A DNA stretch of 64,000 nucleotides, from IMG/VR virus record IMGVR_UViG_3300033233_000001, positions 62,001 to 126,000 of that record, one strand, 5' to 3'. Made by a program: the position numbers and the translations under genes. Shown here in pieces: positions 7,156-24,246 of this stretch (position 1 is its first letter; the number at the start of each line of letters is the position of its first letter). The notes below the pieces were generated by a model. That model saw nothing but the letters and a program-made list of their open reading frames with translations, did no database searches and had not been told where the DNA came from.

Positions 7156-7418
7156 AGCCCGCCGACCTCAAGCGGCTATCGCCGCAGTCCGAGATGTGCG
7201 AGCCGTGTGGCGAGTGCCGACGCTGCCAGGAACGGCACGTCTGGAAAGACGAGGCACGTCGGCTCCGCGCACAGCAGAAGCGCCTCGCGCAGGCCGCGAT
7301 CGACTTCATCGAGGCCGCGGGCGCGACGGAGACGCCGGGGCTGTTGGAGCGACGCTTGCGAACGCTCGCGGAGAAGGCAGGCGCGCAGTCGTCAGTTGCG
7401 CATCGCGACGGCAAGTAG
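7131..7418 (+). CDS. small CxxC-CxxC hypothetical protein (likely start GTG ~7152)
   Basis: CEPCGECRRC motif; GAGGAG RBS. Confidence 0.5.
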   Translation: MDARGEVVKPADLKRLSPQSEMCEPCGECRRCQERHVWKDEARRLRAQQKRLAQAAIDFIEAAGATETPGLLERRLRTLAEKAGAQSSVAHRDGK

Positions 7419-7763
7419 CCCGAGGCCGACGACAGCGACCGCGCCGCCGATCGCCCAGGGCGTCCAGTCCATTGCGGGCATGACGACGCTCGTGATCGGC
7501 GTGGGGCCGCCGTAGGTCGGGGCCGGCGCGCCCTTGCCACCGCCGCCGTAGGTCGGGGGCGGCGGCGCGTAGCCGCCGCCAGTGGGCTTGGCACCGCCTG
7601 TCGGCGCGGGCGGCCGTGTGGTCGTGCTCGTCGTCGTCGTTGCTCGACTGGCCAGGTACGCCGCAACCTGGGCGTCGGTGGCGGTTGGATGTGCCTGTCG
7701 GTACTCGACCTCTTCGAGCGAGAAGGTCGTTTCCTGTCCGAAGCCTTCGCCGTGGTAGCTCAT
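7392..7763 (-). CDS. Pro/Gly/Thr-rich protein with C-terminal TM helix (putative virion membrane protein)
   Basis: MSY start, GFGQ motif, PTYGG repeats, WAIGGAVAVVGLGLLAVAM TM. Confidence 0.7.
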   Translation of the reverse strand: MSYHGEGFGQETTFSLEEVEYRQAHPTATDAQVAAYLASRATTTTSTTTRPPAPTGGAKPTGGGYAPPPPTYGGGGKGAPAPTYGGPTPITSVVMPAMDWTPWAIGGAVAVVGLGLLAVAMRN

Positions 7764-7773
7764 CGTCGGCTCC

Positions 7774-8055
7774 TCAGTTCGGTCGGTGTCGTCGACGGCG
7801 ACCCCGGTTGCGGCGCGGTCCAGCGACTGCCTGATGGGCGAACCAGCCGACGCCGAGGCCGACGAAGCCGGCGGTCGCGACGCTGAGTCCGACGCCGACG
7901 CCGGTCAGATCGAGCCCGAGCGCCTGCCCGAGCCCGGCCATCGAGATGATCGGCGCTGCGGTTGCGCAGCCCGTGCACGCGCATCCGCCACCGCAGCCGA
8001 GACCCATCAGCGGGTACCTGTTCGAGCGCATGCCCGAGATCCTCTGGTAGCTCAT
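7774..8055 (-). CDS. small membrane protein with GLG motifs, Cys cluster and Arg-rich tail
   Basis: MSYQ...LMGLGCGGGCACTGC...MAGLGQ...TM...RRNRGRRRR. Confidence 0.65.
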   Translation of the reverse strand: MSYQRISGMRSNRYPLMGLGCGGGCACTGCATAAPIISMAGLGQALGLDLTGVGVGLSVATAGFVGLGVGWFAHQAVAGPRRNRGRRRRHRPN

Positions 8056-8119
8056 GCCGGAGAGGATAGCGCAAGAGACGGTGCGCGCGCCAGCGGCACG
8101 CGGTACTCTAGGATCGGAA

Positions 8120-8830
8120 ATGCGCGACGCGCTCGTCAAGGTTGGCCTCGGCCTCGCGACCGCCGCGTACGTTCGCGACGCCGTCACCCGTCCCTACGAG
8201 ATGGCTGGCATCGCGCGGCGCCTCGCCCGCACGAGCGGCAAGCCCATGGTGAACCTCGGGGCCGGCGTGAGCGGCCGCTCGGTACGCGCGTCCCTGATGG
8301 GCCCGCGCTTCTGGGGCGACGCGAACCTCGACGACTGCGCGCCGGTGTGCTCGCCGGGCCCGAACATCGTCAGCTACTCCGACTACTACACGCTCCCCTG
8401 GTCGGACAGGTACTTCGGCGCGCTCTTCGCGTGCGATGTGCTCGAACACCTAGAGCATCCGGACGTGGCTCTCGTCGAGTGGCAGCGCGTCGCCGACTAC
8501 GTCGTCGTCTGCGTGCCGGCGCTCTGGCGGCCGGACAAGTGGCTCGCCCGCTGGTACGTCGAGCCCGACCTGACGCGTGCGTGGCCGATCTGGGCTCGCA
8601 GATCTCGCACGGCGATCTTGCCAGTGTCGGACACTCGTGCGTATAGTCCCGGCCGATGTCCGACAAGAATCCTGCCCCGTTCTCCGGCTCCGCCGGCCAT
8701 GCCGTCCCCGCCGCCCTCGCCGGCATCCCAGCCGCTTCCGCCAGCCCGCCAAGCGGACGATGGTACCGAGTCATTGCCTGTCATCTCGACGCTGGCGGTA
8801 CTTTCGGGATCCGACTCCGGGAATACCTGA
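8120..8830 (+). CDS. class I SAM-dependent methyltransferase-like protein with N-terminal hydrophobic segment
   Basis: VNLGAG motif I-like; LPWSDRYF..DVLEHLEHP. Confidence 0.65.
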   Translation: MRDALVKVGLGLATAAYVRDAVTRPYEMAGIARRLARTSGKPMVNLGAGVSGRSVRASLMGPRFWGDANLDDCAPVCSPGPNIVSYSDYYTLPWSDRYFGALFACDVLEHLEHPDVALVEWQRVADYVVVCVPALWRPDKWLARWYVEPDLTRAWPIWARRSRTAILPVSDTRAYSPGRCPTRILPRSPAPPAMPSPPPSPASQPLPPARQADDGTESLPVISTLAVLSGSDSGNT

Positions 8831-9225
8831 GCCGCGCGGTCTACGACCGGTCGACGACGTTCCGCTTCCTCGCGGCCGAGGCGAAGAAGCTCGCGGACTC
8901 GGAAGCGGTGGGCGTCATCGACGAGCAGGGTGCGCTCGTCCATCTGCTCGCTGGCAAGACCGGCCGTTTCGCGTCCGCCGACCTGAAGAAGCTCGTGATC
9001 GCCAAGCTCGCCGCTGACGGCGGCCGCGAGCCCGACGAGAAGCCGCCGGCCGAGAAGAAGAAGCGCACGAGCCGCAAGCCAAGCGTGAAGCGTACGTCGA
9101 GAAAGAAGAAGGACCCGACGGGCGCCGCCGCGGGAAAGCGCACGAGCAAGAAGCGCACGAGCCGAAGAAAGAAGCCGAAGGCGCCGGAAGCGGCTTCGTC
9201 ACGTTCGTCGATCTGGAACGCCTGA
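8656..9225 (+). CDS. hypothetical protein with basic C-terminal tail (4x KRTS[RK])
   Basis: TATAGT box 8 nt upstream of ATG; histone-H1-like tail. Confidence 0.6.
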   Translation: MSDKNPAPFSGSAGHAVPAALAGIPAASASPPSGRWYRVIACHLDAGGTFGIRLREYLSRAVYDRSTTFRFLAAEAKKLADSEAVGVIDEQGALVHLLAGKTGRFASADLKKLVIAKLAADGGREPDEKPPAEKKKRTSRKPSVKRTSRKKKDPTGAAAGKRTSKKRTSRRKKPKAPEAASSRSSIWNA

Positions 9226-9244
9226 AAACCTGAGGAGAACAAGA

Positions 9245-9538
9245 ATGAGCCAGAAGATCCGCCCGCTGAACGATCGAGTCGTCGTACGTCGCGAAAAGCC
9301 GCAGGAGAAGAGTGCCGGCGGCATTTTCATCCCCGACTCGGCGAAGGAAAAGCCGCTGGAGGTCATCGTCGTGGCCGTCGGTCCCGGCCGTTTCGTCGAA
9401 GGGCACGGGCGCGTCGAGCCCAGCGTGAAGACCGGCGACCGCGTGCTCATCGGCAAGTACACCGGCGTCGAGGCCCTGATCGACGGGGTCGAGCACCTGG
9501 TCGTCCGTGAGGACGACATCGTCGGCGTGCTCGGGTAG
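9245..9538 (+). CDS. groES: co-chaperonin GroES (Cpn10)
   Basis: IRPLNDRVVV, GGIFIPDSAKEKP, VAVGPG, VKTGDRVL..KYTG; GAGGAG RBS. Confidence 0.97.
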   Translation: MSQKIRPLNDRVVVRREKPQEKSAGGIFIPDSAKEKPLEVIVVAVGPGRFVEGHGRVEPSVKTGDRVLIGKYTGVEALIDGVEHLVVREDDIVGVLG

Positions 9539-9780: not shown

Positions 9781-10383
9781 ATGCCGACGCTACAACTTCC
9801 GGCGTACACGCCGGCCCTCTACCTGCCGGGCTCCTACGGCCGGTACTGGACGTACAACCCGTTCGCCCCGTACAACACGACGACCCCGATCCCAGGGGCC
9901 GGCTACAGGCCTGCGCGACTCCGTTGGGGCGAGCAGGAACTCAACTTGGACGGCGCACGGCCTGGCAAGCGCTACGTCTACGGGAACTACGCTCGTGGCG
10001 GCGGCGTGCCGCTGCTCGGACTCGGCGGCTACCTCGGGCAGACGCCGTCGACGGTTCCGGCAGTCGCTCAAGTGACGCCGGAAGAGTCGGAGTCTGCGTT
10101 TGCGAAGTTCGCGACGATCGCTCGCCGCATCTGGGGCGAGCCCGCGCCGATCGTCCACTACTCGCCGCGGTCGGCAACGGCCGGCGGCTCGACGACGTTG
10201 CAGTTCGGTCAAGGCGTGCCGGCGATCAACTACGGCGCGCTCGTCGACTACGCGAAGATCACGGCGGTCGGTACCTTCATTGGGGTCCCGGTTGCGGCCG
10301 CGCTCGGTGCATGGGTGATGCACCGTTCGATGGCCAAGAAGACGGCGACGGCGAACCGTAGTCGACGCCGGAGGCGCCGGTGA
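9781..10383 (+). CDS. membrane protein with GLG motif and Arg-rich C-terminus (putative structural)
   Basis: LLGLGGYLGQ; C-terminal TM; ANRSRRRRRR. Confidence 0.7.
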   Translation: MPTLQLPAYTPALYLPGSYGRYWTYNPFAPYNTTTPIPGAGYRPARLRWGEQELNLDGARPGKRYVYGNYARGGGVPLLGLGGYLGQTPSTVPAVAQVTPEESESAFAKFATIARRIWGEPAPIVHYSPRSATAGGSTTLQFGQGVPAINYGALVDYAKITAVGTFIGVPVAAALGAWVMHRSMAKKTATANRSRRRRRR

Positions 10384-10790
10384 GCGCAGCGACCACGCTT
10401 GCGATGCGGCCGATGACTCGACGGGCGTCGCTCGCTCGACGACGCGCACTCAACCTCGGCAACTACGACGGCGGTGACGGGCTCGGGCAGGTCACGGGCC
10501 AGGACATCGGCAACGCCGCGACGCTGATCGCGGGACTCATCTCAAATCCCGATGCGACGCTTGCTGCGCGCGGTCCGGGTATCGTCAACGCGCTCGATCG
10601 GCACATCGTCGGTCCCGCGATGCGCACGACGATCCGACGCTACATTGTTCCGTACTTCGGGCCGCCGCTGCTCGTGCTCTATGTCCTCTCTGGGCTCAGC
10701 ATGTGGGCGAGTTACTCGGTGCTCCAAGAGTTCAGGGCTGGGAAGCTCAAGGCGAACCGCGGCCGACGGCGGAAGAGGCGAAGTCGATGA
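10380..10790 (+). CDS. membrane protein with GLGQ motif and Arg-rich C-terminus (putative structural)
   Basis: GDGLGQ; TM; ANRGRRRKRRSR. Confidence 0.7.
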   Translation: MSAATTLAMRPMTRRASLARRRALNLGNYDGGDGLGQVTGQDIGNAATLIAGLISNPDATLAARGPGIVNALDRHIVGPAMRTTIRRYIVPYFGPPLLVLYVLSGLSMWASYSVLQEFRAGKLKANRGRRRKRRSR

Positions 10791-11398
10791 GGCAGATCTC
10801 GAAGGACGGCGGCATCTTCGGTGGCCGCATGGGCGAGCGCGAGTGGAACGCGGGCCGCGCGCTGGAGCGCCGCGCCTCGATGGGCGAGGGCCGCTTCACG
10901 TCCGGCTCGGTCGACACCGAAGACCTCGCGCCGAAGACCTGGATTCTCTGGAAGCACGCAAGCAAGGGCTTGGAGATCTGCACTGTCGAGTGCGAGATTC
11001 ACCGCCAGCCGCGCGCGTCCGACCCGGGCGAAGCGGTCGCGATGCTCGTTGGGCAGTGCCCGGTATGCTATCGCGAGCACAAGAACCCGGACGGATCTCC
11101 GCAGGTCAACTACTTTCACGTGCGTGAAGACAACAAGGGAATGAGCCTTGATTGGGTCTCGTACGGCAAGCTGCCGCCGAGTCACCACCTCGCGGTCAAC
11201 TGGAAATGGCATGCTGAGCACAAGCTCGGCCGAGCCCCGATGTCGGACGACAAGATCGCGATGGTGTCGAGTCCAGAGCGCTGGATTTGCGACTACTGTC
11301 ATTCGTGGTGCGTGAAGGTTACCGATTCGATCGCCATCACGGATACGACCGGCGCGACGGTCCTGGTCATGGATATGAAGGCAGCGGCGCCGAAGTGA
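10787..11398 (+). CDS. Zn-binding hypothetical protein
   Basis: CPVC and CDYC pairs; ATGA overlap. Confidence 0.65.
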   Translation: MRQISKDGGIFGGRMGEREWNAGRALERRASMGEGRFTSGSVDTEDLAPKTWILWKHASKGLEICTVECEIHRQPRASDPGEAVAMLVGQCPVCYREHKNPDGSPQVNYFHVREDNKGMSLDWVSYGKLPPSHHLAVNWKWHAEHKLGRAPMSDDKIAMVSSPERWICDYCHSWCVKVTDSIAITDTTGATVLVMDMKAAAPK

Positions 11399-11823
11399 GC
11401 TATCGGGCTCCACTTCCGCCAGTCCGGCCGGGGCCAATCCCGCAGGTGCATCCGAGCCAGCAGATACCTCCGACGGAGCGGTTCTATCCGCTCTCGCTCG
11501 CACAGACGCCGTCGACACTCGCACAGCCTGCGAGCGGCTGGGACACGCGCACGCTGATGCTGCTTCTCGCGGCTGCTGCTGTCGGCATCTGGCTCTGGCA
11601 GCGGTTCTTCGCCAAGAAGAAGAAGGTCGCGCGCAACGAGGCTCTGTACCTCACGACCGAGGGGCCGCTGCGAGGCCTCGATCGGGCACGTAAGCGCATG
11701 GCCACGAGCGCCAAGCTCCTGATGTCTGAGGGGCACGAGGGCGCCGCGAAAGACCTCGAAGAGATCGGCGCGATGCTCGCGGAGTTCACGCGTCGGACGC
11801 GAGAGCAGACGCTGGAGGACTGA
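11395..11823 (+). CDS. single-TM hypothetical protein (MSYRAP...)
   Basis: GTGA overlap; TM followed by KKKK. Confidence 0.65.
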   Translation: MSYRAPLPPVRPGPIPQVHPSQQIPPTERFYPLSLAQTPSTLAQPASGWDTRTLMLLLAAAAVGIWLWQRFFAKKKKVARNEALYLTTEGPLRGLDRARKRMATSAKLLMSEGHEGAAKDLEEIGAMLAEFTRRTREQTLED

Positions 11824-11825
11824 CG

Positions 11826-12146: not shown

Positions 12147-12149
12147 CCG

Positions 12150-12779: not shown

Positions 12780-12791
12780 GGTCCGATCCCG

Positions 12792-14231
12792 ATGTCAGAC
12801 ACCACGCCGAGTCCAGCGCCTGTGCCGGATGTTCCGCTCCCGCTGTCCGAGAAGAAGGAGGAGGCGGCGGAGATCGCGATCGCCAAGAACGTCTACCAGC
12901 CGGCGAGTCCGGAGTTCAAGGCCGTACACGAGGCTCTGAACGAGCAGATGACGGGCGACGTCGCCTCTCGTGTCGGTTACCAGTACGTGGCCGAGCCAGC
13001 CGAGGGCCACGACGTCGTTGGCCTCTGGCATACGTACCCGTGTGGCACGCGCAGCGGCTACGCGGCGCACGCGGTCGCGCTGCACTCGGCGCTGGAAGCG
13101 CTCGGCATCCCGACGATGCTCGCACCGCATCCGTCGATGGAGATCGACATCACGAAGTTTCCGGATGACCGGGAAGAGATGCAGATGCGGTGGATCAAGA
13201 CCGCGGTCGGCATTCCGAAGGCGTTCATCGCGAGCTTTCCGCCCGACCTCAACGCCGCGCGCGCGCTGAATCTCGGCGTACCGAGTTTCGTCCCCTACGT
13301 CGCTTTCGAGGCGCTGCCGATGAGCGAGTACGCCACGCGCCTGTGCGCGTCGCCCGCGATGACGCAGATCTGGTGCGTCAGTGACTTCACGCGGCGCTGC
13401 TACGCGGCATCCGGCGTCGATCCTGCCAAGCTCCGCGTCGTCCGACCCGCCGTCTGCGATGGCCCATGGGCCGCGATGGCGCAGCAGCGGCCCTCGCGCT
13501 CCGACGGCCCGTTCGTCTTCGGCGTGAACGGCACTTGGCACGAGCGAAAGGGCTTCCATAACCTCGTACGCGCGTACTTTTCGGCGTTCAGCCGGAAGGA
13601 CGACGTGGTGCTTGCGATCCGCACGAGCTACTTCGGCGAGGGCCGAAATCAGCCGCTGCTCATGGACTTCGAGCGTCAGGTGCTCGGTCAGATCGGAACG
13701 CTCAAGCTCGACTTCCAGAAGCCCGACTGGGAGTCGCCGCGGATCAAACTCTTGAGCGGCACGGGCATCACTGACGCGGCCCTCGCCGAGTGGCTTGGCA
13801 AACTCGACTGCTACGTCAATCCCAGTTTCGGCGAGGGCCTCGGTATCCCGGTCATCTGGGCAGCTGCGCAGGGCGTGCCGATCGTGACCAGCGACTTCGG
13901 CGCGGTCGGCGATCTCGCGCGCGAGTGTTCCGGCATGGCCGACGTCGGCATGTCGTTCCGCACGTTCCCGAGCAAACTCGTGCCGGTCCCGCGCGAGATG
14001 CTCAAGCACAGCGCGCTTCTCAGTCGACAGTCCCAGTGGGGAGGCTACGAGGTGCCGGCGCTTGCCGAGCAGATGCGCGCGGCGTTCGACGCGGGACGCA
14101 TCCGTAGCGTTGAGACAGCTGCCGAGGTCAGGCGGCAGTTCTCGTTCGAGGCGACGCGTCCGGCGCTGCTCTCGGCTGTACGCTCGCTCGCCGACGCCGA
14201 AACGCTAGCCGGCTGGGGGGTCTCGTCGTGA
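12792..14231 (+). CDS. glycosyltransferase family 4 (GT-B)
   Basis: SGY, ERKG, DCYVNPSFGEGLGIP. Confidence 0.9.
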   Translation: MSDTTPSPAPVPDVPLPLSEKKEEAAEIAIAKNVYQPASPEFKAVHEALNEQMTGDVASRVGYQYVAEPAEGHDVVGLWHTYPCGTRSGYAAHAVALHSALEALGIPTMLAPHPSMEIDITKFPDDREEMQMRWIKTAVGIPKAFIASFPPDLNAARALNLGVPSFVPYVAFEALPMSEYATRLCASPAMTQIWCVSDFTRRCYAASGVDPAKLRVVRPAVCDGPWAAMAQQRPSRSDGPFVFGVNGTWHERKGFHNLVRAYFSAFSRKDDVVLAIRTSYFGEGRNQPLLMDFERQVLGQIGTLKLDFQKPDWESPRIKLLSGTGITDAALAEWLGKLDCYVNPSFGEGLGIPVIWAAAQGVPIVTSDFGAVGDLARECSGMADVGMSFRTFPSKLVPVPREMLKHSALLSRQSQWGGYEVPALAEQMRAAFDAGRIRSVETAAEVRRQFSFEATRPALLSAVRSLADAETLAGWGVSS

Positions 14232-15319: not shown

Positions 15320-15606
15320 GCGGCAGCACTATGGGACCCTATCTTCGTCGTATCGGCAGTGGCCCGGTCGAGGTGATGCTCCGCGTGCAGGACTTCACGA
15401 TGCGTGCGGACCCGGCGAAGGGCATTGGTGGCGCCGGCCAGGAACTCGTCGCGTTCGTCGCGAATGACTTTCGCGAGGCCGGTGAGGATGTCTGGGAGTT
15501 CGATGTCGTGGAAGAAACGGCGGACGGTAAGCGCCGGCAGCTGCGTATCGGCGTGCTCGGCAATGACATCGTCATCGTACGCTCAGAAAGTCGCGTGGCA
15601 TCGTGA
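15316..15606 (+). CDS. hypothetical protein
   Basis: ATGA overlap. Confidence 0.6.
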   Translation: MSGSTMGPYLRRIGSGPVEVMLRVQDFTMRADPAKGIGGAGQELVAFVANDFREAGEDVWEFDVVEETADGKRRQLRIGVLGNDIVIVRSESRVAS

Positions 15607-16393: not shown

Positions 16394-16396
16394 CCA

Positions 16397-17068: not shown

Positions 17069-17742
17069 TGCGACTTACTCTTGGCTGCCCGACGCTGCGT
17101 CGCTACGATCTGCTTGCCGGGATGATCCGGTCGGCTGTCGCAGGGTCGCGTACGCCAGACCGTTACTACATCATCGACAACGGCGGCGGTTTGATGGCGA
17201 ACGGGACGCCAGATTTCGTGCAGCCGGAGATGGTGATCGGCGTGCCGAGTGAAAACCTCGGCTGTGCGGGCTCGTGGAACAAGATGGGGCACGTCATGCT
17301 GCTGACCGATGACGACGCCCTGCTCATTGCCGCCGATGACATCCTCTTCGAGTGCGACACGATCGGAGAAATGCTGCACGCCATGGAGACCGAGGACGTC
17401 GACTTCGTGACCGCGAAGCCGGGCGGGTTCTCCTGCTTCATGGTCCGCAAGCGGCTCTTCGACAAGGTAGGCTACTTCGACGAGCAGTTCTGGCCAGCGT
17501 ACTTCGAGGACAACGACTTCCATCGCAGGATGCAGCTGTCTGGCATCTGCAAGGAGGCCGAGGTCGACGCGCAGTACGAACACGTCAACAAGGGGAGCCA
17601 GACCGTGGCTTCGTTCAATCGCGCGGAGAAGCACGAGCATAATCAGCGCTTCGAGAAGAACCGAGACCGGTACGTCGCAAAGTGGGGCGGTCTTCCGCAC
17701 GAAGAGAAGTTCGACGAGCCGTACAACGGACTGGCCGAGTGA
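17065..17742 (+). CDS. glycosyltransferase family 2
   Basis: IIDNG, NLGCAGSWN, DD, VGYFDEQF.PAYFEDNDF. Confidence 0.9.
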   Translation: MMRLTLGCPTLRRYDLLAGMIRSAVAGSRTPDRYYIIDNGGGLMANGTPDFVQPEMVIGVPSENLGCAGSWNKMGHVMLLTDDDALLIAADDILFECDTIGEMLHAMETEDVDFVTAKPGGFSCFMVRKRLFDKVGYFDEQFWPAYFEDNDFHRRMQLSGICKEAEVDAQYEHVNKGSQTVASFNRAEKHEHNQRFEKNRDRYVAKWGGLPHEEKFDEPYNGLAE

Positions 17743-18896
17743 CCAAGAAGATCCAGCTGTTTGCGCCGCGGTACCATGTCGAGGAGACGCTGGCGGCAAT
17801 CCGCGAGTGCTTGGAAGTCGGCTGGACGGGTCTGGGCTTCAAGACTGACGAGTTCGAGCGCGCCTGGTGCGAATACACGCGACTGCCGCACGCGCACTTC
17901 GTAAACTCAGCGACCGCCGCGCTGCATATGGCGGTCGAGGGTCTGAAAGAGGCTGATGGCTGGAAGGACGGCGACGAGGTCGTTACTACGCCGATCTCTT
18001 TCGTCTCCACCAACCACGCGATCCTCTACGCGTCGCTGAAGCCGGTGTTTGCCGACGTCGACAAGTACACGTTGAACCTGTCTCCGGAGGGCGTACGCGC
18101 CGCGATTACGGACAGGACGCGGGCGGTCATGTTCGTCGGGATGGGCGGGAACGCAGCGTACTTGGACGAGATCAGCACTCTGTGCAAGGAGCGCAACCTG
18201 CGACTGATCCTCGATGCGGCACACATGGCTGGCACGAGAGACCGAGGGCGGCATATCGGTCACGAGGCTGACGTCGCGTGTTTCAGCTTTCAGGCCGTGA
18301 AGAACCTGCCGACGGCCGACAGCGGAATGGTGTGCTTCGCCGACGCGACGCTCGACGCTTGGGCCAGGAAGTGGTCGTGGCTCGGCATCAACAAGAACAC
18401 CTACCAACGGACGGGTCAGCAGGGTAGCTATCGATGGGACTACGACGTCGAGCACGTGGGCCACAAGTACAACGGCAATAGCGTGATGGCGGCGATGGGT
18501 CTGGTGGCGCTAAAGTATCTCGACCGGGACAATGCGTATCGTCGGCAGCTGGCTGATTGGTACGACGGGCTGATGCCGCTGCGGATTCTCGACGACAACG
18601 TGCCCGCCGTCAGCCTCGTTGCGCATTGCGACGGCTCGTCGCGACATCTCTACCAGGCGATGGCCCACGACCGCGACGCGCTGATGGTGTTCCTGAACGC
18701 GAGCGACATCTATCCGGGCGTGCACTACAAGGACAATCGCAAGTACGGCATGTACGCGGACGCGGTCGATCGGTGTCCGAACGCGAGTGAGGTAAGCCGC
18801 AGCGTTGTGTCGCTGCCAATGCACCTCGACCTGTCGCGCGCGGACGTGGAACGGGTCGCGGAAGCGATCAGCGAGTTTTACGCGAGGCCGGCGTGA
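17739..18896 (+). CDS. DegT/DnrJ/EryC1/StrS PLP-dependent sugar aminotransferase
   Basis: NSATAALH, DAAH, FSFQAVKNLPTADSG. Confidence 0.95.
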   Translation: MTKKIQLFAPRYHVEETLAAIRECLEVGWTGLGFKTDEFERAWCEYTRLPHAHFVNSATAALHMAVEGLKEADGWKDGDEVVTTPISFVSTNHAILYASLKPVFADVDKYTLNLSPEGVRAAITDRTRAVMFVGMGGNAAYLDEISTLCKERNLRLILDAAHMAGTRDRGRHIGHEADVACFSFQAVKNLPTADSGMVCFADATLDAWARKWSWLGINKNTYQRTGQQGSYRWDYDVEHVGHKYNGNSVMAAMGLVALKYLDRDNAYRRQLADWYDGLMPLRILDDNVPAVSLVAHCDGSSRHLYQAMAHDRDALMVFLNASDIYPGVHYKDNRKYGMYADAVDRCPNASEVSRSVVSLPMHLDLSRADVERVAEAISEFYARPA

Positions 18897-20089
18897 AGCT
18901 CCGCGAGCAATTCTCTGGCGAGGGGCTCTGGTTCGACCTGGTTGGTCCGCAGTGGCTGAACCTGTCGCTGTCATGGCGCAGCGAGACGCGTATCCGCGAG
19001 CAGTTTCACGACAGCCGGGCGATCGCGTACCAAGACCATCTCCGCTGGTACGAAAGCGTTTATGCAGACGATGTCGCGCACCAGGCGATGTGGATGTTCG
19101 GCGACGCGGAGCACGGCGTCATCGGACAGGCTTCGCTGTACGAGGCCCATCGGACGCCGGGGACGATCACGTTCGGACGTTTCTACGTCGGACGTGAAGA
19201 TCTGCTCGCGCGTGGCTACGGCACGCGAGCGATGCGCGCGGCGTGCGCGCGTGCGTTCGCTCTTGGATTTCAGCGTGTCACTCTCGATGTGAAGCCGCAG
19301 AACCTGGCGGCAATTCGACTGTACCGGAAGTGCGGGTTCGCGGTCGTCGGGACGTTGGTCGACTCGGACTCGGTGCACATGGCACTATCAGCGCCAGGTA
19401 GCCTCACTCACTCGGTTGTAGTCGGGAGCTACAATCGGCCACGGTACGTCGCGCAGACACTGAGGTCTATCGCTACGCAGTCACGGCCGAACTGGGAGTG
19501 CATCGTCAGCGACGACGCGTCCGACGAAAAGACGTTGGAAGTGATCCGAGCGTTCACTGACAAGGACCCGCGGTGGCGGTTGCTGGTGGCTACGGATCGG
19601 CCACCACGTGGAACGCGGGTGAACGCGAACGTCCGAGCGGTCGAGCGGATCAACGACGCGCTCGCGCTCGTCACGGGCGATGTGATTCACTATATCCCGG
19701 ACGACGACATGTTCGCAGCAGACCGCTTCACGCATTTCGATGGCGTGTTCGGCGATGTTGGCAAGACGATGGCGTACGGCCGACTACGCTACATCGTCGA
19801 GGAAGACATCACGGACAACTACCTGTTTCCCGGTGGGCCGGTAACCGAGGTCTACGGGCGACTCGATCAGTCACAGGTAGCGCACCGTCGGACGGCTTTC
19901 GAGAAGGTGCCGAAATGGCCAACAGAGCCTGACTTCATTGGGTACGCCGCGGACGGTCGCTTCTATCAACAGCTGGTGGCCGCGGGCCTTGGTCCCGTCT
20001 GGCCGGTCGACGCGCTCGTGTCTTACAAGCGGAGTCACGAGTTCAACCTGCAAAAAACGCAGTCCGCGTCCGATGAGCGACGGGAGTAG
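18893..20089 (+). CDS. GNAT N-acetyltransferase (PseH-like) fused to GT2 glycosyltransferase
   Basis: RGYG, NLAAIRLYRKCGF; then SYNRP, DDAS, YIPDDD. Confidence 0.85.
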   Translation: MKLREQFSGEGLWFDLVGPQWLNLSLSWRSETRIREQFHDSRAIAYQDHLRWYESVYADDVAHQAMWMFGDAEHGVIGQASLYEAHRTPGTITFGRFYVGREDLLARGYGTRAMRAACARAFALGFQRVTLDVKPQNLAAIRLYRKCGFAVVGTLVDSDSVHMALSAPGSLTHSVVVGSYNRPRYVAQTLRSIATQSRPNWECIVSDDASDEKTLEVIRAFTDKDPRWRLLVATDRPPRGTRVNANVRAVERINDALALVTGDVIHYIPDDDMFAADRFTHFDGVFGDVGKTMAYGRLRYIVEEDITDNYLFPGGPVTEVYGRLDQSQVAHRRTAFEKVPKWPTEPDFIGYAADGRFYQQLVAAGLGPVWPVDALVSYKRSHEFNLQKTQSASDERRE

Positions 20090-20094
20090 CCGGC

Positions 20095-21189
20095 ATGGGA
20101 ACCGGGTCAAAGATCTGTGTCGTAACGCCTAGCTGTCGGCCGGAGAACTTGCCGTTGGTGGATATGAGCATCAGGCGCGCGCGCCGCCTTACCACCGTGG
20201 AATGGTTCGTGGTGTTGGACGAAACCAAAGGCGTCATCGCTGTACCGCCCGATCTGACGATCGATCACGTGGTCCGCACGGCGAGTGCTGCTGACGTTAC
20301 GGCGTGGCGTGGCAATCATCTGCGTAATCTGGCTATCAACGCCATCGAGACGCCGGAGTCCTGGGTGGTCATGGTGGACGATGACAACTTGCTGTCGCCG
20401 TCGCTGGTGGACGCGCTCATCAAGGAACCGGCGGACACAGACTGGATCATTCCTAGTCGAGTCATGCCCGATGGGACGGTCGTCGCCGCGTCCGCGCCGA
20501 AGGTAGAGTCTATCGACGCCGCACAGATCGCGGTGCGTCGTCGTGCGCTCGGTAGCCTGCGATTCGGTACGCGCTACGAAGCGGACGGGGACTTGGCCGT
20601 CAAGCTGTACGAGTGGTGCCCGGCTGTGGAATGTCGTGTGGACGTCGAGGTTACCTACAACGCGCTGGAAGCAGCGCCGGGGAGGTGGAAAACGATTGCT
20701 GGGTGGCTCAACGTTCCCACCATGTATGAGCGCGTGCTGCGAGAGGTGCCTGCGATGGGCCGAGTGGCTGAGGTGGGCATCTATGCAGGCAGATCGTCGT
20801 TGTTCATGTTCGAGCACATGAAAGAGTGGAAGAAGCCGGTTGAGTATCACGTGATCGACATCTGGGACGACAAGTTCGTTCGCCAGGGCTGGGAGATCGT
20901 CTCGCGGTGGTATAAGCCGTTCTTTACGGAGTGGTGGCTGCCGTCCGTACAGGCGGCAAGGCACTTCGCAGACGCGTCGTTGGATGCGGTCATCCTGGAT
21001 GCGGATCATACGTACGAAGCTGTGCGCGACGATCTGGCAGCATGGGTGCCAAAGGTGAAGCCTGGTGGAATCGTGGTCGGTGACGACTACAGGCACCCGG
21101 TGTACCCTGGCGTCGCAATGGCAGTTGACGAGGCGCTTGGTCCTGTCGAGTTCATCGCGCCCATGGGATTTTTCTGGCGGAAGCCGTGA
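20095..21189 (+). CDS. GT2-like domain fused to class I methyltransferase (Methyltransf_24-like)
   Basis: VTPSCRPENL, DDDN; EVGIYAGRS, LDADHTYE, KPGGIVVGDDY. Confidence 0.85.
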   Translation: MGTGSKICVVTPSCRPENLPLVDMSIRRARRLTTVEWFVVLDETKGVIAVPPDLTIDHVVRTASAADVTAWRGNHLRNLAINAIETPESWVVMVDDDNLLSPSLVDALIKEPADTDWIIPSRVMPDGTVVAASAPKVESIDAAQIAVRRRALGSLRFGTRYEADGDLAVKLYEWCPAVECRVDVEVTYNALEAAPGRWKTIAGWLNVPTMYERVLREVPAMGRVAEVGIYAGRSSLFMFEHMKEWKKPVEYHVIDIWDDKFVRQGWEIVSRWYKPFFTEWWLPSVQAARHFADASLDAVILDADHTYEAVRDDLAAWVPKVKPGGIVVGDDYRHPVYPGVAMAVDEALGPVEFIAPMGFFWRKP

Positions 21190-21208
21190 TCTGAGACGGA
21201 GGCGTGCC

Positions 21209-21823
21209 GTGGCGGGAGTAACGATCATCGGGTGTTCGCGAAGCGGAACGACGTATACTGCACTTGTCCTGCGGTGTTTTGGTGCCGATGTTGGCCATGA
21301 GCGGCTGGGGCGTGATGGGATCTGCTCATGGATGGTGTCTGTAGACCTCGAAGTACGAAGCCCGTGGGGTGATGGGACGCGGCGCCGCGACATCCCCCGC
21401 GACAACCATGTCATTCATGTAGTGCGGCATCCGCTCGACGTTATCGCTTCGATGAACACCCGTCCGGACTCGGTGCCGTCCGGGGCCTCGGCTCAGCATC
21501 TGCGCGCTGGTCTGTTGAAGATCGGCGCGACGGACCCGGGAACGACGATGTCGCTACGAGCCAGAATGATCATCTGGCACGAGTGGACGCGCCACTGCCG
21601 CCGCGAATCAGAGCAGACTATTCGCGTATCTGAGATGCCGACGCGTGTGCCTGAACTGGTGCGACGGATCGGGATCGAGCCCAAGCTGCTGGGATCCCTC
21701 CCGTCGACGACGACGAACGCGCGGCCACATGCGCGTCTCGCATGGGCCGATCTGGACAGAGAAGACGCGACGATCTGCGAGCAGATTCGCGCGGCGGCCG
21801 GCGAGTATGGGTTTGTGCCATGA
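21209..21823 (+). CDS. sulfotransferase-like protein
   Basis: IGCSRSGTTY (PAPS-binding loop), HVVRHPLDVIAS; GGAGG RBS. Confidence 0.75.
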   Translation: MAGVTIIGCSRSGTTYTALVLRCFGADVGHERLGRDGICSWMVSVDLEVRSPWGDGTRRRDIPRDNHVIHVVRHPLDVIASMNTRPDSVPSGASAQHLRAGLLKIGATDPGTTMSLRARMIIWHEWTRHCRRESEQTIRVSEMPTRVPELVRRIGIEPKLLGSLPSTTTNARPHARLAWADLDREDATICEQIRAAAGEYGFVP

Positions 21824-22635
21824 AACGATTAGTTATCTATGCGCACTACGACCGCGAGTCGAAGGTCAAAGGCTACGTCAAGTTCATGCTTATGGCGCTA
21901 CGTCCGCTTGCCGAGAAGCTGGTCTTTGTGTCGACGTCGGTGTTGACCGAGGCGCAGATCAACGATGTAAGGCCGCTCGTTGATCAAGTACGTCGGATTC
22001 CAAACATCGGGTACGATGTGGAGATGTACCGTAGTACATTGAAGGAAGTGCCGGCGGCCGACTACGACGAGTTAGTGTTGGTGAACTCAAGCACCCTCGG
22101 CCCGGTAGGCAATCTTGGCGCGCTGGTGGAGCGAATGAGTGCAGATCCGTGTGACTTTTGGGGCATGACGGACGGCACGGAGATGGGCTACAATCTACAA
22201 GGCTACTGGCTCGTTTACAAGCAGCGTGTGTGTTGCTCTCCGGCATTTGCGGAGTTTTGGGACAAGGCGGTCCCACTTCAGGACAAGCAGCAGATCATTC
22301 AGCGCTACGAGCACGGCCTGACGGCACACATGTGTGCGGCGGGATTCAAGGCCGGATGCGTGGTCTCGTGTCATACGTTGGGGTTGGCAGGGTCCAACGT
22401 GACCTATTGGGCGCCAGATCGACTGTTGCGCTTGGGCGTGCCGCTCGTGAAAATCGGAATGCTTCGCGAGCGTGACGTGGCCGTAACGTTGCGAGTGAGA
22501 AAGCAGATGGCAGACGCGGGATATGACACGAAGCTGGTCGACGAGGCGGTCCCGACACTGGGTGCGGCGGCAGCAGCGCCGGTGCAGGGACCGCGCGGCG
22601 GAACGGCGCGTCATCCGAGGAGGGGGCGCCGCTAG
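21820..22635 (+). CDS. rhamnan synthesis protein F (RgpF)-like
   Basis: IYAHYD, NIGYD, LVNSS.LGP, DFWGMT, IQRYEHGL. Confidence 0.8.
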   Translation: MKRLVIYAHYDRESKVKGYVKFMLMALRPLAEKLVFVSTSVLTEAQINDVRPLVDQVRRIPNIGYDVEMYRSTLKEVPAADYDELVLVNSSTLGPVGNLGALVERMSADPCDFWGMTDGTEMGYNLQGYWLVYKQRVCCSPAFAEFWDKAVPLQDKQQIIQRYEHGLTAHMCAAGFKAGCVVSCHTLGLAGSNVTYWAPDRLLRLGVPLVKIGMLRERDVAVTLRVRKQMADAGYDTKLVDEAVPTLGAAAAAPVQGPRGGTARHPRRGRR

Positions 22636-22648
22636 GCGCTCGTTGCGG

Positions 22649-23275
22649 ATGATGGACGTGTTCCGTGGTCGTGTGCAAGTAGGTGGCGAGTGGATCGCTT
22701 ACGGGAAATCGCCTGAATGTCATCCGGGTGATATTCCGCATCAGAAGGACCGGCAGACGCTTCATGCGTACGAGCAGGTCTTCTCTGGCTGGTCGCCGAG
22801 AGCGGTGCTGGAGGTTGGCGTCTGCGACGGAGGTAGTCTGCTGATCTGGCGAGCACTATGGCCGGCCGCGCGCGTCGTGGGCGTTGACTGTCGAGTGCCG
22901 CCAGACCGCGCTATGGCGGCGTTTGTAGGTCTGCACGTGGAGTTTATCCACCGTGAGATGCCGGCACAGCTGGACCTGCCTGCTGCTGGGTTCGATCTGG
23001 TGATTGACGACGGCGCGCACGGCTATACGTCGGTAGCGTCGAACTTCGAGATCTGCTGGCCACTGGTCGCACCTGGCGGTCGGTATGTCGTCGAAGACTG
23101 GCATTTGCCCGAGTTCGATCCTGGTAGGATCGGTGGTCTGCTCGCAGAGACAGTGATCGGCGCGGACGATGGCGCGCACTTCTGCGACGGCGACTTTCCA
23201 CCGAACTCGGCGCTGCGGGTGGAGGTCTATCGCCGAATGATCGTGGTCTACAAGCGGGGCGGCGACGAAGACTAG
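22649..23275 (+). CDS. class I SAM-dependent methyltransferase
   Basis: VLEVGVCDGGSL, FDLVIDDGAH, PGGRYVVED. Confidence 0.85.
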   Translation: MMDVFRGRVQVGGEWIAYGKSPECHPGDIPHQKDRQTLHAYEQVFSGWSPRAVLEVGVCDGGSLLIWRALWPAARVVGVDCRVPPDRAMAAFVGLHVEFIHREMPAQLDLPAAGFDLVIDDGAHGYTSVASNFEICWPLVAPGGRYVVEDWHLPEFDPGRIGGLLAETVIGADDGAHFCDGDFPPNSALRVEVYRRMIVVYKRGGDED

Positions 23276-24246
23276 GTCGCCGGCAGCCGCGGTGGCTCCA
23301 TGATCTTCCCGGTCATGAACCCGAGACCTGCGCCGAGTCCGGCTGCCAGCCACTTGTTGCGGACGAGATTGCCGCTCAGGCCGGCGGCGGCGCCAAGCGT
23401 CGTGAGCAAGATCGTCGCCAGCTGCGACTGCGTGATCGTGATCCCGGCCATGCCGCTGATGGCACGCGTGCTTCCTACGATCTGAGTCGAGCCGTCCGGA
23501 CCGACGATCAGGGTACGCGTGCCGAGCGAGCCGCCGGAGATGGTTAGCGTGCACGGCTGTCCAGTTCGCTGGGCGTTTCCGAGCGCCAGACCGATGCCGG
23601 TCGAGTAGTCGACGTTGCTGGCGATGACCTGGCCGCCACAGGTAACCGTGCCAGTGCCGAGGCTGGTCGACCGCGCCATGAGGCTGGCGCGGTCGACAGA
23701 AGCCGGCAGGACGCCGCTGGGGGTCGTCGCAGCCGGTACGGGCGTAGCTGGCGCCTGGGAGGGCGCGCGCCCGAGCAGCCGGTCGAGCCAGGTACAGCCG
23801 AGGCCGTCGCCGGTGTCGCCCATCGCAGCGGCGCGTATGCGCTCACGCGTCGGCGGCGCGATGCCGCCGCCCAGCCACTTCGGCGACGGACGGCCGATGC
23901 TGCGTGCGTACGCGTCGGCCGCTGCACGCGTTGCCGGCCAGCTGTCGACGACGCAGCCGCCCCACGACGTGTTCGTCGCCGGGTCGTAACCGAAGCTCCC
24001 GCCGAGGCCCATGATGCCGCGGTAGGGATCGAGCCCGTACCTCATGATGTCCGGCTCGCCCGTCACCCACGAGCCGTGCTCGATGTACGGCGCGATCGGA
24101 AGGCCTGCCTCCTGAAGCCGCTGGAAGTTCGGCGGCGCGGTCACGCCAGGCGGGAGTGCCGCGAAACTCAGCTGCCCAGGGACTCCTTTCGCTTGGCCGA
24201 GGCCAGCGAGCGGACGGCGACGTGGACGCGGTGCTCGGTACGACAT
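23272..24246 (-). CDS. multi-GLG-motif protein with C-terminal TM segments (putative structural)
   Basis: MSYRAP start, LAGLGQ, IMGLGG, GDGLGC; TAGGAT 7 nt upstream of ATG. Confidence 0.7.
   Translation of the reverse strand: MSYRAPRPRRRPLAGLGQAKGVPGQLSFAALPPGVTAPPNFQRLQEAGLPIAPYIEHGSWVTGEPDIMRYGLDPYRGIMGLGGSFGYDPATNTSWGGCVVDSWPATRAAADAYARSIGRPSPKWLGGGIAPPTRERIRAAAMGDTGDGLGCTWLDRLLGRAPSQAPATPVPAATTPSGVLPASVDRASLMARSTSLGTGTVTCGGQVIASNVDYSTGIGLALGNAQRTGQPCTLTISGGSLGTRTLIVGPDGSTQIVGSTRAISGMAGITITQSQLATILLTTLGAAAGLSGNLVRNKWLAAGLGAGLGFMTGKIMEPPRLPAT

Follow-up and report, generated by a model that had tools for sequence, protein, structure and literature searches.

Several groups of viruses and bacteria are known in which unrelated proteins share a short signal for processing or sorting. 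In adenoviruses, which have no membrane and whose capsid is of the jelly-roll kind, many unrelated virion proteins (the precursors pVII, pX/mu, pVI and pVIII, Arg-rich DNA-condensing core proteins among them) are cut at a short Gly-containing site by adenain (Peptidase_C5), a protease of clan CE. In phage T4, a short N-terminal leader (MKTYQEFIAE) is shared by the unrelated internal proteins IPI-III and Alt and is removed during head maturation by gp21, whereas phiKZ-like phages also process their inner-body proteins. The cargo proteins of these phages are basic and lie with the DNA, their cleavage sites end in Glu (LxE, IxE or S/A/G-x-E), the protease is a serine protease of the herpesvirus assemblin type, and the phages themselves have HK97 capsids, portals and terminases. 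On the other hand, the internal-membrane icosahedral viruses with vertical jelly-roll capsid proteins, such as SPV1, the Sphaerolipoviridae (P23-77, SH1, HCIV-1, HHIV-2) and PRD1/Tectiviridae, have genomes of 10-45 kb and a packaging ATPase of the FtsK/HerA type, and are not known to carry comparable leader or tail signals. Among bacterial enzymes, transglutaminase-like cysteine proteinases such as LapG cut at a motif of small residues in an exposed N-terminal region, whereas small transglutaminases such as Bacillus Tgl form crosslinks in the spore coat. C-terminal tripartite sorting signals (LPXTG/sortase, PEP-CTERM/exosortase, MYXO-CTERM and others) consist of a signature motif just before a helix, which is followed by only 2-5 basic residues. 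Finally, protamine-like core proteins regulated by phosphorylation are found in eukaryotic viruses (baculovirus P6.9 with PK-1, and the hepatitis B core C-terminal domain).

Here, about thirty otherwise unrelated proteins carrying the same short end signals are described in an uncultivated bacterial virus of roughly 298 kb from a sediment metagenome. The starting point was a window of 64,000 nucleotides (positions 62,001 to 126,000 of IMG/VR record IMGVR_UViG_3300033233_000001), where a first-pass annotation proposed a family of membrane proteins with MSY starts, [LMI]xGLG(Q) motifs and xNR-poly-Arg tails, which would be virion or internal-membrane proteins processed at a shared site of the adenovirus type in a lipid-containing, possibly tailless virus with an unusually large genome.

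Signal motifs in the window

Every element listed by the first-pass annotation is present, and its observation is confirmed and stronger than first described. Coordinates below are those of the window, and the orthologs mentioned belong to related IMG/VR loci, of which L020 and L021 are two. Membrane helices were called only by a hydropathy window.

7392..7763 (-), g120, 123 aa: MSYHGEGFGQ, a Pro/Gly/Thr-rich linker and a C-terminal predicted membrane helix (WAIGGAVAVVGLGLLAVAM; hydropathy 2.36), ending ...MRN; the ortholog in L020 reads MSYKHGFGQ... and has the same helix.
7774..8055 (-), g121, 93 aa: MSYQRISG...PLMGLGC...SMAGLGQ, a Gly-rich helix and the tail PRRNRGRRRRHRPN; the ortholog in L020 keeps MSYQRIAG, PLMGLGC, AGLGH and PRRNRGRRRRTN.
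8656..9225 (+), g122, 189 aa: four KRTS[RK] repeats (positions 136, 145, 161 and 166) in a basic C-terminal region; 70% identical to the ortholog in L020, with no Pfam match.
9245..9538 (+): a GroES (Cpn10) co-chaperonin lying between the motif genes (Pfam PF00166, E 1e-28).
9781..10383 (+), g124, 200 aa: a conserved N-terminal domain, PLLGLGGYLGQ, a linker, a predicted membrane helix and the tail TANRSRRRRRR; the orthologs read PLLGLGQ and PLRGLGQ, with tails SNGARRRRR and QNKRRRRRGVR, and an ORF of similar build lies in the capsid module of a distant relative (E 2e-4).
10380..10790 (+), g125, 136 aa: a variable leader, GDGLGQ, a conserved body (LISNPDATL), a helix and the tail KANRGRRRKRRSR.
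10787..11398 (+), g126, 203 aa: a conserved Cys/His-rich protein of unknown function, co-transcribed with the motif genes; 68-70% identical in L020 and L021, with no Pfam match.
11395..11823 (+): a 142-aa ORF, the second MSYRAP protein, absent from the gene calls, which starts MSYRAPLPPVRP at a GTG overlapping the stop of g126 and has a central predicted membrane helix followed by KKKK.
12822..23275 (+): a 10-kb glycan synthesis cluster between the two groups of motif genes, with two GT4, two GT2 (one fused to a GNAT), a DegT aminotransferase, two methyltransferases and an RgpF-like protein (Pfam); syntenic in L020 and L021.
23272..24246 (-), g142, 324 aa: starts MSYRAPRPRRRPLAGLGQAK (read as MSYRAPRPRRRPLAGLGQ...), with further IMGLGG and GDGLGC and hydrophobic C-terminal segments, but no poly-Arg tail; the ortholog in L021 starts MSYSLGQAKWVPGQ.
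24296..25078 (+), g143, 260 aa: a protein-kinase-like protein divergent from g142, 48% identical in L021; a phmmer search against PDB sequences gave GRK1 (E 0.002, residues 109-239 on the kinase catalytic core) and then mostly AGC kinases, whereas Pfam gave nothing at E<=0.1.

Enrichment, co-occurrence and conservation of the signals

The frequency of the motifs was analyzed over the 478 genes of the whole 297.7-kb genome, whose ends overlap by 126 nt. GLGQ occurs 11 times against 1.4 +/- 1.2 in within-protein shuffles (maximum 4), whereas the permutations QGLG, GQGL, LGQG and GLQG score 0-3, and [LIM]xGLG occurs 22 times against 6.4. The generic adenain patterns are only marginally enriched ([LIM]xGxG, 111 against 86 +/- 11; [LIM]xGG, 107 against 87). 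MSY is the commonest start tripeptide (23 of 478 genes) and is written with five different Ser codons, which indicates selection at the protein level; the codons of the motifs also vary. MSY starts, G[LMF]GQ, a C-terminal helix and an Asn-poly-Arg tail co-occur (odds ratios 12-48), as seen for MSY with G[LFM]GQ (odds ratio 39, p=1.5e-7), GxGQ with a C-terminal hydrophobic helix (odds ratio 48, p=8e-9) and the N-poly-R tail with a helix (odds ratio 19, p=3e-7). Asn directly precedes the C-terminal polybasic run in 15 of 58 cases, an 11-fold enrichment, and KRTS[RKG] occurs 42 times against 0.65 expected. Of 24 G[LMF]GQ in all six frames, 13 lie in called coding frames and 2 more in missed ORFs of the block described below.

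However, the carriers are not a sequence family, since an all-against-all BLASTP search finds no similarity among them beyond the termini. They share modular end signals instead, and sit mostly outside the window, in a 42-kb same-strand block at genome 206-248 kb, where 20 of the 57 genes carry at least one signal against 15 of 421 elsewhere.

Seven related IMG/VR loci keep MSY...G[LMF]GQ and the helix plus N-poly-R tail while the spacer changes. In an alignment of 8 orthologs of g125, residues G34, G36, Q37 and N126 are invariant, whereas the leader varies from 8 to about 100 aa; one ortholog starts MSYRGMG, and one has a g124-type N-domain fused exactly at the GLGQ to a g125 body. The motif is therefore a junction between modules, as expected of a cleavage site. 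In the g142 ortholog (MSYSLGQAK...), the spacer is lost and conservation begins right after the Q. In g124, on the other hand, the part before the motif is the better conserved half.

A candidate enzyme and the putative virion context

The conserved core of the leader is Y-x(0-12)-G-[LMF]-G-Q and not the adenain consensus, as the hydrophobic P4 is not conserved in orthologs (YSGLGQ, GDGLGQ, GEGFGQ and YSLGQ are examples). Searches of the genome for an adenain or Ulp1-like protease (Peptidase_C5 or C48) found none. The same-strand block does begin, however, with a highly conserved 191-aa protein predicted to have a transglutaminase (papain-like) fold, g408 (genome 247996-248571, minus strand), for which 153 metagenome homologs are 57-83% identical. 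C110, H148 and D165 are invariant in this family, in the order and spacing of the transglutaminase core, and Pfam Transglut_core is the only family matched (6 of 27 members, best E 2.6e-6). It is the only such gene in the genome, although the match of g408 itself is below the curated cut-off (16.8 bits against 23) and the fold also includes true transglutaminases and other enzymes. A complex prediction of g408 with a 24-residue leader gave no answer.

Searches for tailed-phage hallmarks were negative. Terminase_6N, TerL_ATPase and the HK97 Phage_capsid family find nothing in six frames at E<=10, and PHROG scans of about 60 proteins, including nearly all of 280 aa or more and the main block proteins, gave no confident head, portal, terminase, sheath, tube or baseplate family. 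Neither an A32 or FtsK-type ATPase, nor a packaging ATPase of any kind, nor an NCLDV-type capsid was found either. The two most conserved genes of the block are small and adjacent. A protein of the g366 family models as a jelly roll, with weak matches to capsid proteins of internal-membrane viruses, whereas g364 (54-87% identical) models as a 60-aa helix plus a low-confidence beta domain. This pair, together with a DnaJ gene and small MSY-starting membrane proteins, recurs in distant relatives. Next to them lies g369, a protamine-like protein of 740 aa with 136 Arg and a net charge of +140, whose Arg/Ser-rich half is conserved in four relatives.

Comparison with described systems

As with the adenovirus precursors, many unrelated proteins share a short Gly-containing site, Arg-rich putative core proteins and a candidate jelly-roll capsid protein are also in common, and about half of the sites here happen to fit (M/L/I)xGx-G, but Gln after the second Gly is conserved here, the candidate enzyme has another fold, and the host is bacterial, as indicated by Shine-Dalgarno sites. 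The leader resembles the T4 capsid-targeting sequences in being short, N-terminal and shared by unrelated proteins, and its proposed removal at a simple consensus site and the basic, putatively DNA-associated cargo would be further parallels, although those sites end in Glu, and no HK97 capsid, portal or terminase was found here. The best structural matches of the g366-family model are to the vertical jelly-roll capsid proteins of SPV1, Sphaerolipoviridae and Tectiviridae, two adjacent small capsid-like genes occur as in sphaerolipoviruses, and many small predicted membrane proteins lie in the structural block, but the genome is far larger. With respect to LapG and Tgl, the g408 family has the Cys-His-Asp core in the right order, but at 191 aa g408 is core only, virus-encoded and placed at the head of a putative morphogenesis block. 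As in the C-terminal sorting signals, a helix followed by a basic cluster is shared by many unrelated proteins, but here the conserved piece, [TS][AP]N, follows the helix and the tail has 7-12 Arg. As in P6.9 and the hepatitis B core, Arg-rich stretches are interspersed with Ser and Thr (KRTSR, RRRSRRN) and the virus encodes a kinase-like gene, although this assignment is weak.

Discussion

The interpretation offered by the first-pass annotation is only partly supported: the motif is enriched and conserved, its carriers belong with a virion-type gene block, the genome is very large and no HK97 capsid, terminase or tail family was detected, whereas the link to adenain is not supported, and a candidate protease of another fold replaces it. 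What the analysis establishes is the motifs themselves, with their enrichment, co-occurrence, conservation and clustering, the conserved Cys/His/Asp protein, a jelly-roll model for the g366 family and the absence of detectable tailed-phage hallmarks. In contrast, cleavage and its position, the activity of g408 and its pairing with these substrates, the membrane, DNA binding, residence in the virion and taillessness are inferred from sequence and models alone.

Among the alternatives, the one that retains most weight, although it is unlikely, is a very divergent tailed jumbo phage, whose signals would mark internal head proteins (inner-body or ejected) loaded through a targeting leader and trimmed by a prohead protease, as in T4 and phiKZ-like phages. 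There would be no virion membrane, the helices would act in the host membrane after ejection, and the jelly-roll proteins would be decoration or tail parts. The automatic taxon labels of the nearest Atlas clusters are mostly Uroviricota, the N-half of g374 is related to proteins of tailed jumbo phages (phrog_2319, Tunturi_5, RsoM2USA and KVP40-like phages), the accessory genes are typical of jumbo phages (RtcB, RNA ligases, a Ro-like protein, a nucleotidyltransferase, GroES and homing endonucleases), and the jelly rolls also match a phage cement protein and a tail fibre. However, the negative terminase, capsid and PHROG searches and the models of the two most conserved block proteins speak against it, and a protein of net charge +140 is unlike a phage that packs naked DNA with a motor. 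A less likely possibility is that g408 is a true transglutaminase, with the Gln of the motif as acyl donor joined by an isopeptide bond to a Lys of a capsid or core protein, so that the exposed tags would staple membrane and core proteins covalently to the shell, as Tgl does in the Bacillus spore coat. In favour of this, Gln is the most conserved residue of the motif (the commonest after GLG, 11 of 80, and invariant in the g125 family), the only conserved enzyme candidate matches the transglutaminase core, the motif lies in exposed, Gly-rich, probably flexible stretches, and a conserved Tyr lies a few residues upstream, aromatic residues being common in good microbial transglutaminase Gln-tags. 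On the other hand, the motif behaves as a junction at which modules are exchanged or fused, and the free variation in length upstream of it fits a cleavage site better than a tag. In addition, some orthologs have H instead of Q (AGLGH), no conserved partner Lys has been identified, and most bacterial Transglut_core proteins are thought to be proteases or are uncharacterised.

It is also improbable that these proteins are not virion parts but are placed in the host cell membrane, for example for lysis, exclusion of other phages or building a replication or assembly compartment, with leader and tail as mere insertion and topology signals. The tail-anchored architecture with a strongly positive C-terminus would fit, and the window copies sit beside GroES and a glycan cluster rather than in the capsid block. 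However, most carriers lie in one co-oriented block with the most conserved, capsid-like genes, an ORF of similar build follows the capsid-like genes in a distant relative, several carriers have the basic tail but no helix, and tails of 8-12 Arg, together with the +140 protein, go well beyond a topology signal. Finally, an artefact of Gly- and Arg-rich translation of 65% G+C DNA or of wrongly chosen frames can be regarded as refuted. Although off-frame ORFs of this genome are Arg-rich and glycine makes up 8% of residues, neither shuffles nor motif permutations reproduce the counts, 15 of the 24 six-frame occurrences lie in real frames, the codons vary, and the motif residues are invariant in orthologs that are 50-80% identical overall.

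In any case, the reading that best fits the data, which remains tentative, is that the window proteins are outlying members of a set of about 30 structurally unrelated proteins of the morphogenesis module, marked by modular end signals and not by common descent. The leader, M-[ST]-Y-(R)-x(0-12)-[GSA]-[LMF]-G-Q, whose Y...G-φ-G-Q can also lie at an internal domain junction, would be a recognition and cleavage site for g408. The cut would most likely fall between G and Q, with L/M/F in the P2 position, as the S2 pocket of papain-fold proteases prefers bulky hydrophobic residues, and would remove a short leader or separate two modules during particle maturation, in a way that would resemble T4 capsid-targeting leaders or adenovirus precursor processing. 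However, a leader that is thrown away does not by itself explain why M-S-Y is conserved. In the tail, a single C-terminal hydrophobic helix followed by [TS]-[AP]-N-R-(G/S)-R4-8, the helix would anchor the protein in a lipid bilayer, probably an internal virion membrane, and the poly-Arg would stay on the cytoplasmic (positive-inside) face and bind either DNA or the capsid shell, although in a PRD1-like assembly tails on that face would point to the capsid and not to the DNA. The KRTSR repeats, together with the protamine-like protein, point to a nucleoprotein core condensed by Arg-rich proteins, which the kinase-like g143 may regulate. In this view, the carriers would be virion membrane and core proteins, and the virus may be an unusually large tailless, membrane-containing phage.

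Genome and gene calls

The virus record, taken from IMG/VR, is 297,749 bp long and 65% G+C, and its completeness was estimated at 90% by CheckV. The window is bases 62001-126000 of this single record. Although IMG/VR lists it as linear, its last 126 nt repeat positions 11-136 (genome 1-136 and 297624-297749, an overlap with a 10-nt offset), so the assembly closes on itself. Among sequencing runs, the window was found only in a sediment metagenome, which is probably the source sample, and no RNA run was found. A megablast of 18 kb against phage records gave no match. Gene starts often overlap the preceding stop and many of them are preceded by GGAG-type ribosome sites, which indicates that the host is a prokaryote. 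A total of 478 genes were called with a codon-usage caller trained on the genome itself, which misses or truncates extremely Arg-rich genes.

A shared set of terminal signals

Every element reported by the first-pass annotation, namely [LMI]xGLG(Q) motifs, MSY starts and poly-Arg tails in predicted membrane proteins, was confirmed at its position, and the observation therefore holds. The motif is not a by-product of Gly richness, since GLGQ occurs 11 times against 1.4 expected from within-protein shuffles, whereas its permutations occur 0-3 times, and [LIM]xGLG occurs 22 times against 6.4. MSY is the commonest start tripeptide (23 of 478 genes), and five different Ser codons are used for it. 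The features also go together, with odds ratios of 39 for MSY with G[LFM]GQ, 48 for G[LFM]GQ with a C-terminal hydrophobic helix, and 19 for the Asn-poly-Arg tail with a helix. Asn stands directly before the C-terminal polybasic run in 15 of 58 proteins, an 11-fold excess, with the consensus [TS]-[AP]-N-R-(G/S)-R-R-R. By eye, no conserved motif precedes the helices, which is where sortase/exosortase-type C-terminal sorting signals carry their signature. Of the 24 G[LMF]GQ found in all six frames, 13 are in called frames and two more are in ORFs that were missed by the caller, MFGLGQ at genome 246013(-) and MTYRMPRVRRNGLGQ, the likely true start of gene g395, both in the gene block described below. 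An explanation of the motifs at the DNA level was rejected, because their codons vary.

On the other hand, the carriers, which the first-pass annotation had called a family, are not a family by descent. All-against-all BLASTP finds no similarity among them beyond the termini, so they are unrelated proteins that carry the same short signals. The window holds only outliers (genes g120, g121, g124, g125 and g142, and the MSYRAP ORF at window position 11395), whereas the main body is a co-oriented block at genome 206-248 kb on the minus strand, where 20 of 57 genes carry at least one signal, against 15 of 421 elsewhere. Examples of N-termini from this block are MSYSGLGQ, MSYRGLGQ, MSYRAQHGFGLGQ, MSYRQPLYGLG and MSYRARRGLGFG, and examples of C-termini are ...SPTANRGRRRARRNKRRR, ...TPNRRRRASRRNKRTSRKA and ...TQRNSRRRRRRSR. 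About 18 of the 35 signal-bearing genes, 13 of them in the block, have a C-terminal hydrophobic helix, which is the only, and indirect, support for a lipid membrane inside the capsid.

Conservation and modular use of the signals

Related IMG/VR contigs (L015-L021) are syntenic and keep the signals. The g120 ortholog starts MSYKHGFGQ, the g121 ortholog keeps PLMGLGC and the tail PRRNRGRRRRTN, and the g124 orthologs read PLLGLGQ and PLRGLGQ. The g142 ortholog starts MSYSLGQAK, so that the 11-residue spacer is gone while the sequence after Q is conserved. In an alignment of eight g125 orthologs the two Gly, the Gln and the tail Asn are invariant, while the stretch before the motif varies from 8 to about 100 residues. 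One ortholog starts MSYRGMGNSGDGLGQ, and another carries a g124-type N-terminal domain joined exactly at the GLGQ to a g125 body.

A Tyr lies 1-5 residues before most motifs (YHGEGFGQ, YLGQ, YDGGDGLGQ, YTGLGQ, YTGMGQ), and the conserved core is therefore Y-x(0-12)-[GSA]-[LMF]-G-Q, of which MSY is the case where the core sits at the very N-terminus. A further short motif, G-[LI]-F-x-[RN]-[ND]-L-F, occurs in three places, the C-termini of g368 and g369 and the N-terminus of g390 (genome 234890-235384; these genes lie in the L009 and L010 stretches of this genome), as GGLYARNLFAGS, GGLFARNLFAGMF and MGKGLFTNDLF...GIFRANLF, and in g390 each copy is followed by xLGQ.

A candidate processing enzyme

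The first-pass annotation had related the motif to adenovirus-type maturation proteases, a link that is not supported. Six-frame HMM searches of the whole genome with the profiles of Peptidase_C5 (PF00770) and of the clan CE Ulp1-like C48 peptidases (PF02902) gave no match at E<=10. The generic adenain patterns are only marginally enriched, with 111 occurrences against 86 expected for [LIM]xGxG and 107 against 87 for [LIM]xGG. Moreover, the position four residues before the scissile bond that adenain would read is not conserved, since orthologs show Y, G, D, S or R there while G-[LMF]-G-Q is kept.

A candidate enzyme of another kind is encoded by the first gene of the block:

Genome 247996-248571 (-): g408, 191 aa, with a weak Pfam match to Transglut_core (PF01841).

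This protein has 153 metagenome homologs at 57-83% identity, which makes it as conserved as the capsid-like genes. C110 (in ...DCDE...), H148 (HTHVF) and D165 (WWVLDP) are invariant in 27 homologs and lie in the order and spacing of the transglutaminase/papain core. Six of these 27 members match PF01841 on their own (best E 2.6e-6) and no other family is matched, but g408 itself scores only 16.8-17.3 bits against a cut-off of 23. It is the only such locus in the genome. A profile of g408 against PDB sequences returned only spurious hits to designed Kelch repeats, and a complex prediction of g408 with a leader peptide gave no answer.

The fold includes proteases such as LapG as well as true transglutaminases, and two readings follow. 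The motif proteins could be cleaved at G-φ-G|Q, in which case L/M/F would sit in the P2 position that papain-fold enzymes read, or they could be crosslinked through the invariant Gln. The behaviour of the motif as a junction, with a freely varying stretch before it and a fused g124-type domain in one g125 ortholog, favours cleavage, although either activity of g408 is inferred from sequence alone.

Predicted capsid-like proteins and packaging genes

Six-frame HMM searches for Terminase_6N and TerL_ATPase (PF03237 and PF03354), the HK97 Phage_capsid family (PF05065), Capsid_NCLDV, and FtsK_SpoIIIE and Pox_A32 (PF01580 and PF04665) found nothing. PHROG scans of about 60 proteins, which covered nearly all proteins of 280 aa or more and most of the larger block proteins, gave no confident head, portal, terminase or tail family. 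The only head-and-packaging matches were weak, one of E 0.0012 to a "virion structural protein" family on g451, and the other of E 0.0006 to a small-terminase family on the HNH domain of an RNA ligase. As only two proteins were modelled, a divergent HK97 fold is not excluded. Pfam added only a DnaJ domain in g350. The only Walker A motifs found in a scan for a packaging ATPase lie in helicases, HNH proteins and the like, and none lies in the block, while the C-terminus of g1 is helicase- or YonV-like and not a packaging ATPase.

The positions of the capsid-like, protamine-like and chaperone genes are the following:

Genome 215738-217260 (-) (L010:3738-5260): g366, predicted jelly-roll gene, split by an insertion carrying a LAGLIDADG gene (g367).
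Genome 218134-220356 (-) (L010:6134-8356): g369, 740 aa, with a protamine-like first half.
Genome 205951-206658 (L009:9951-10658): DnaJ-domain protein with a zinc ribbon.
Window 9245-9538: GroES (Cpn10).

The two most conserved genes of the block are g366 and g364, which are adjacent in all relatives. The protein g366 is 62-72% identical in the close relatives and 24-28% in the distant ones. In this genome its exon 1, which encodes MPKIVGTRERVHQP, lies about 0.8 kb upstream of the rest, and the homologs read on with FYDSLIR, which is found downstream of the insertion. The LAGLIDADG homing-endonuclease ORF g367 sits in between, which suggests a group I intron, and a second LAGLIDADG ORF (g365) lies between g366 and g364. 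A model of the g366 family, built from 40 diverse homologs with a 76%-identical full-length homolog as first row (pLDDT 76, pTM 0.76), is an eight-stranded jelly roll. On the other hand, g364 has 217 homologs, at 58-87% identity among those listed, on contigs up to 259 kb, and models at lower confidence as a 60-residue helix plus a beta-rich domain. A wide structure search with the g364 model was swamped by this helix and is uninformative, Foldseek gave only non-significant jelly-roll capsid hits, and a profile comparison of the g364 and g366 families showed no relation between them.

In distant relatives, the g366 homologs at 24-28% identity sit in the same module, which includes a g364-like gene (27%, E 5e-8), a DnaJ gene, small MSY-starting proteins with C-terminal helices, and a 147-aa ORF that has a g124-like N-domain (E 2e-4) and the tail AKNGRRRRRSRRY. 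This ties g124, a gene of the window, to the capsid-like module.

Directly upstream of these genes, g369 was truncated by the caller and really starts at genome 220356. It is 740 aa long, with 136 Arg and 43 Lys and a net charge of +140, and its residues 61-420 are 31% Arg and 14% Ser (RRRSRRN repeats), whereas its second half has hydrophobic segments and repeats such as TYYAAAGLG. The same arrangement, with conserved N-terminal landmarks, is present in four relatives, so it is coding. A feature search of the Atlas gave no named relative for g369.

The motif KRTS[RKG] occurs 42 times in 23 proteins against 0.65 expected, at N- or C-termini and in 37 different DNA spellings, often as MxKRTSRxPKRTSRR(N) at N-termini or in C-terminal tails. 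It looks like a basophilic kinase site, and a kinase-like gene is encoded in the window:

Window 8656-9225, 47188-47889 and 47895-48833: g122, g178 and g179, the genes of the window with KRTS[RKG] motifs.
Window 24296-25078: g143, next to g142, which resembles AGC-type protein kinases (E 0.002).

Additional features of the genome

Window 12822-23275: glycan cluster of 10 kb (GT4 x2, GT2 x2, GNAT, DegT aminotransferase, two methyltransferases, RgpF-like), conserved in relatives, which suggests a virus-made amino-sugar glycan.
Window 25299-25643: CRISPR-like array of five copies of a 36-nt repeat (GTCACCGGTTTCAGGGCACCGGGCAGCCATTGCGAT) with four spacers of 38-39 nt.
Window 25663-25821 (-) and genome 131015-131170 (+): two small ORFs of 51-52 aa, 94% identical, one of which lies directly beside the CRISPR-like array.
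Window 25842-29129 (-): UvrD-type helicase of 1095 aa interrupted by an intein with a LAGLIDADG domain (Pfam UvrD-helicase, UvrD_C, LAGLIDADG_3, Intein_splicing).
Window 51906-54569 (+): RtcB-type RNA ligase of 887 aa that matches in two separated pieces (residues 68-412 and 768-808), so it may hold an intein.

No cas gene lies next to the CRISPR-like array. TnpB-like transposase genes occur elsewhere in the genome, and two scans for its repeat, intended to reveal the host, found no match in 185,579 reference genomes. Besides the RtcB-type ligase, the genome has a Ro-like RNA-binding protein, two other RNA ligases and a nucleotidyltransferase.

A late promoter shared by the window genes and the block was also looked for, but only sigma-70-like and other motifs before non-structural genes were found. 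A sigma-70-like promoter (GCTTGACA, 17 nt, GCTAGAT) followed by a conserved box GAGCCGNCAAACA lies about 75 nt before the start of at least ten non-structural genes (for example at window 672-750, 1399-1475, 2723-2800 and 4100-4178, and also at genome 254060, 259780 and 295000). A second motif, GCTTGCGACACAC, lies before about ten others, and neither marks the structural block.

Discussion

The simplest account of these data is a virion proteome marked by modular signals. In this view, a leader or junction site would be processed by the viral Cys-His-Asp enzyme, a tail anchor would place many small proteins in a bilayer, and Arg-rich segments, together with a protamine-like protein, would bind nucleic acid or the shell. 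Such a system would work like adenovirus precursor processing and like T4 capsid-targeting leaders, but it is a member of neither. The signals themselves, their enrichment, association, conservation and clustering, as well as the invariant Cys, His and Asp of the g408 family, are established by the sequence analysis, whereas the peptidase or transglutaminase activity of g408, its pairing with the G-φ-G-Q proteins, the membrane, the binding of nucleic acid or shell and the lack of a tail are inferred.

The lipid-containing, possibly tailless virus with a large genome proposed by the first-pass annotation is supported only in part. The absence of detectable hallmark genes, the jelly-roll model, the many helix-bearing proteins and the protamine-like protein point to a tailless particle with a membrane. 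However, the structural scores are weak, no packaging ATPase was found, the neighbouring Atlas clusters carry Uroviricota labels, and the accessory genes are like those of jumbo phages. On present evidence the tailless, membrane-containing reading is tentative and less likely than not, and a tailed but very divergent phage is an unlikely alternative, though not a much weaker one.

Full-text literature searches found no description of a jelly-roll or tailless bacterial virus of this size, nor of a transglutaminase-like maturation enzyme in phages, and a 2026 review on viral gigantism treats large phages as Caudoviricetes only (PMC13359090). Jumbo phages described so far are all tailed, and two 2026 reviews define them that way (PMC13359090, PMC13282480), whereas the known membrane-containing jelly-roll phages are all small. 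With the same tentative standing, this genome and its many metagenome relatives may represent a new lineage of tailless bacterial viruses, with jelly-roll capsid proteins, an internal membrane studded with poly-Arg-tailed proteins and a protamine-like nucleoprotein core. Their genomes of about 300 kb would be roughly ten times larger than those of any known non-tailed phage, they would mature through a transglutaminase-fold protease or crosslinker that recognises G-φ-G-Q, and they would pack DNA without a terminase or an FtsK-type motor.

Independently of the type of particle, the leader, the helix plus Asn-poly-Arg tail and the KRTSR repeats offer a sequence-only way to pick out the virion proteome of a clade in which nearly every structural gene is an orphan, and they name a testable enzyme-substrate pair, g408 and the G-φ-G-Q proteins. 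A widespread sediment and soil lineage joining a 300-kb genome to a jelly-roll, membrane and protamine-type particle would break the link between genome gigantism in bacterial viruses and the HK97-terminase machinery, would parallel the giant viruses of eukaryotes, and would pose a new question about how the DNA is packaged.
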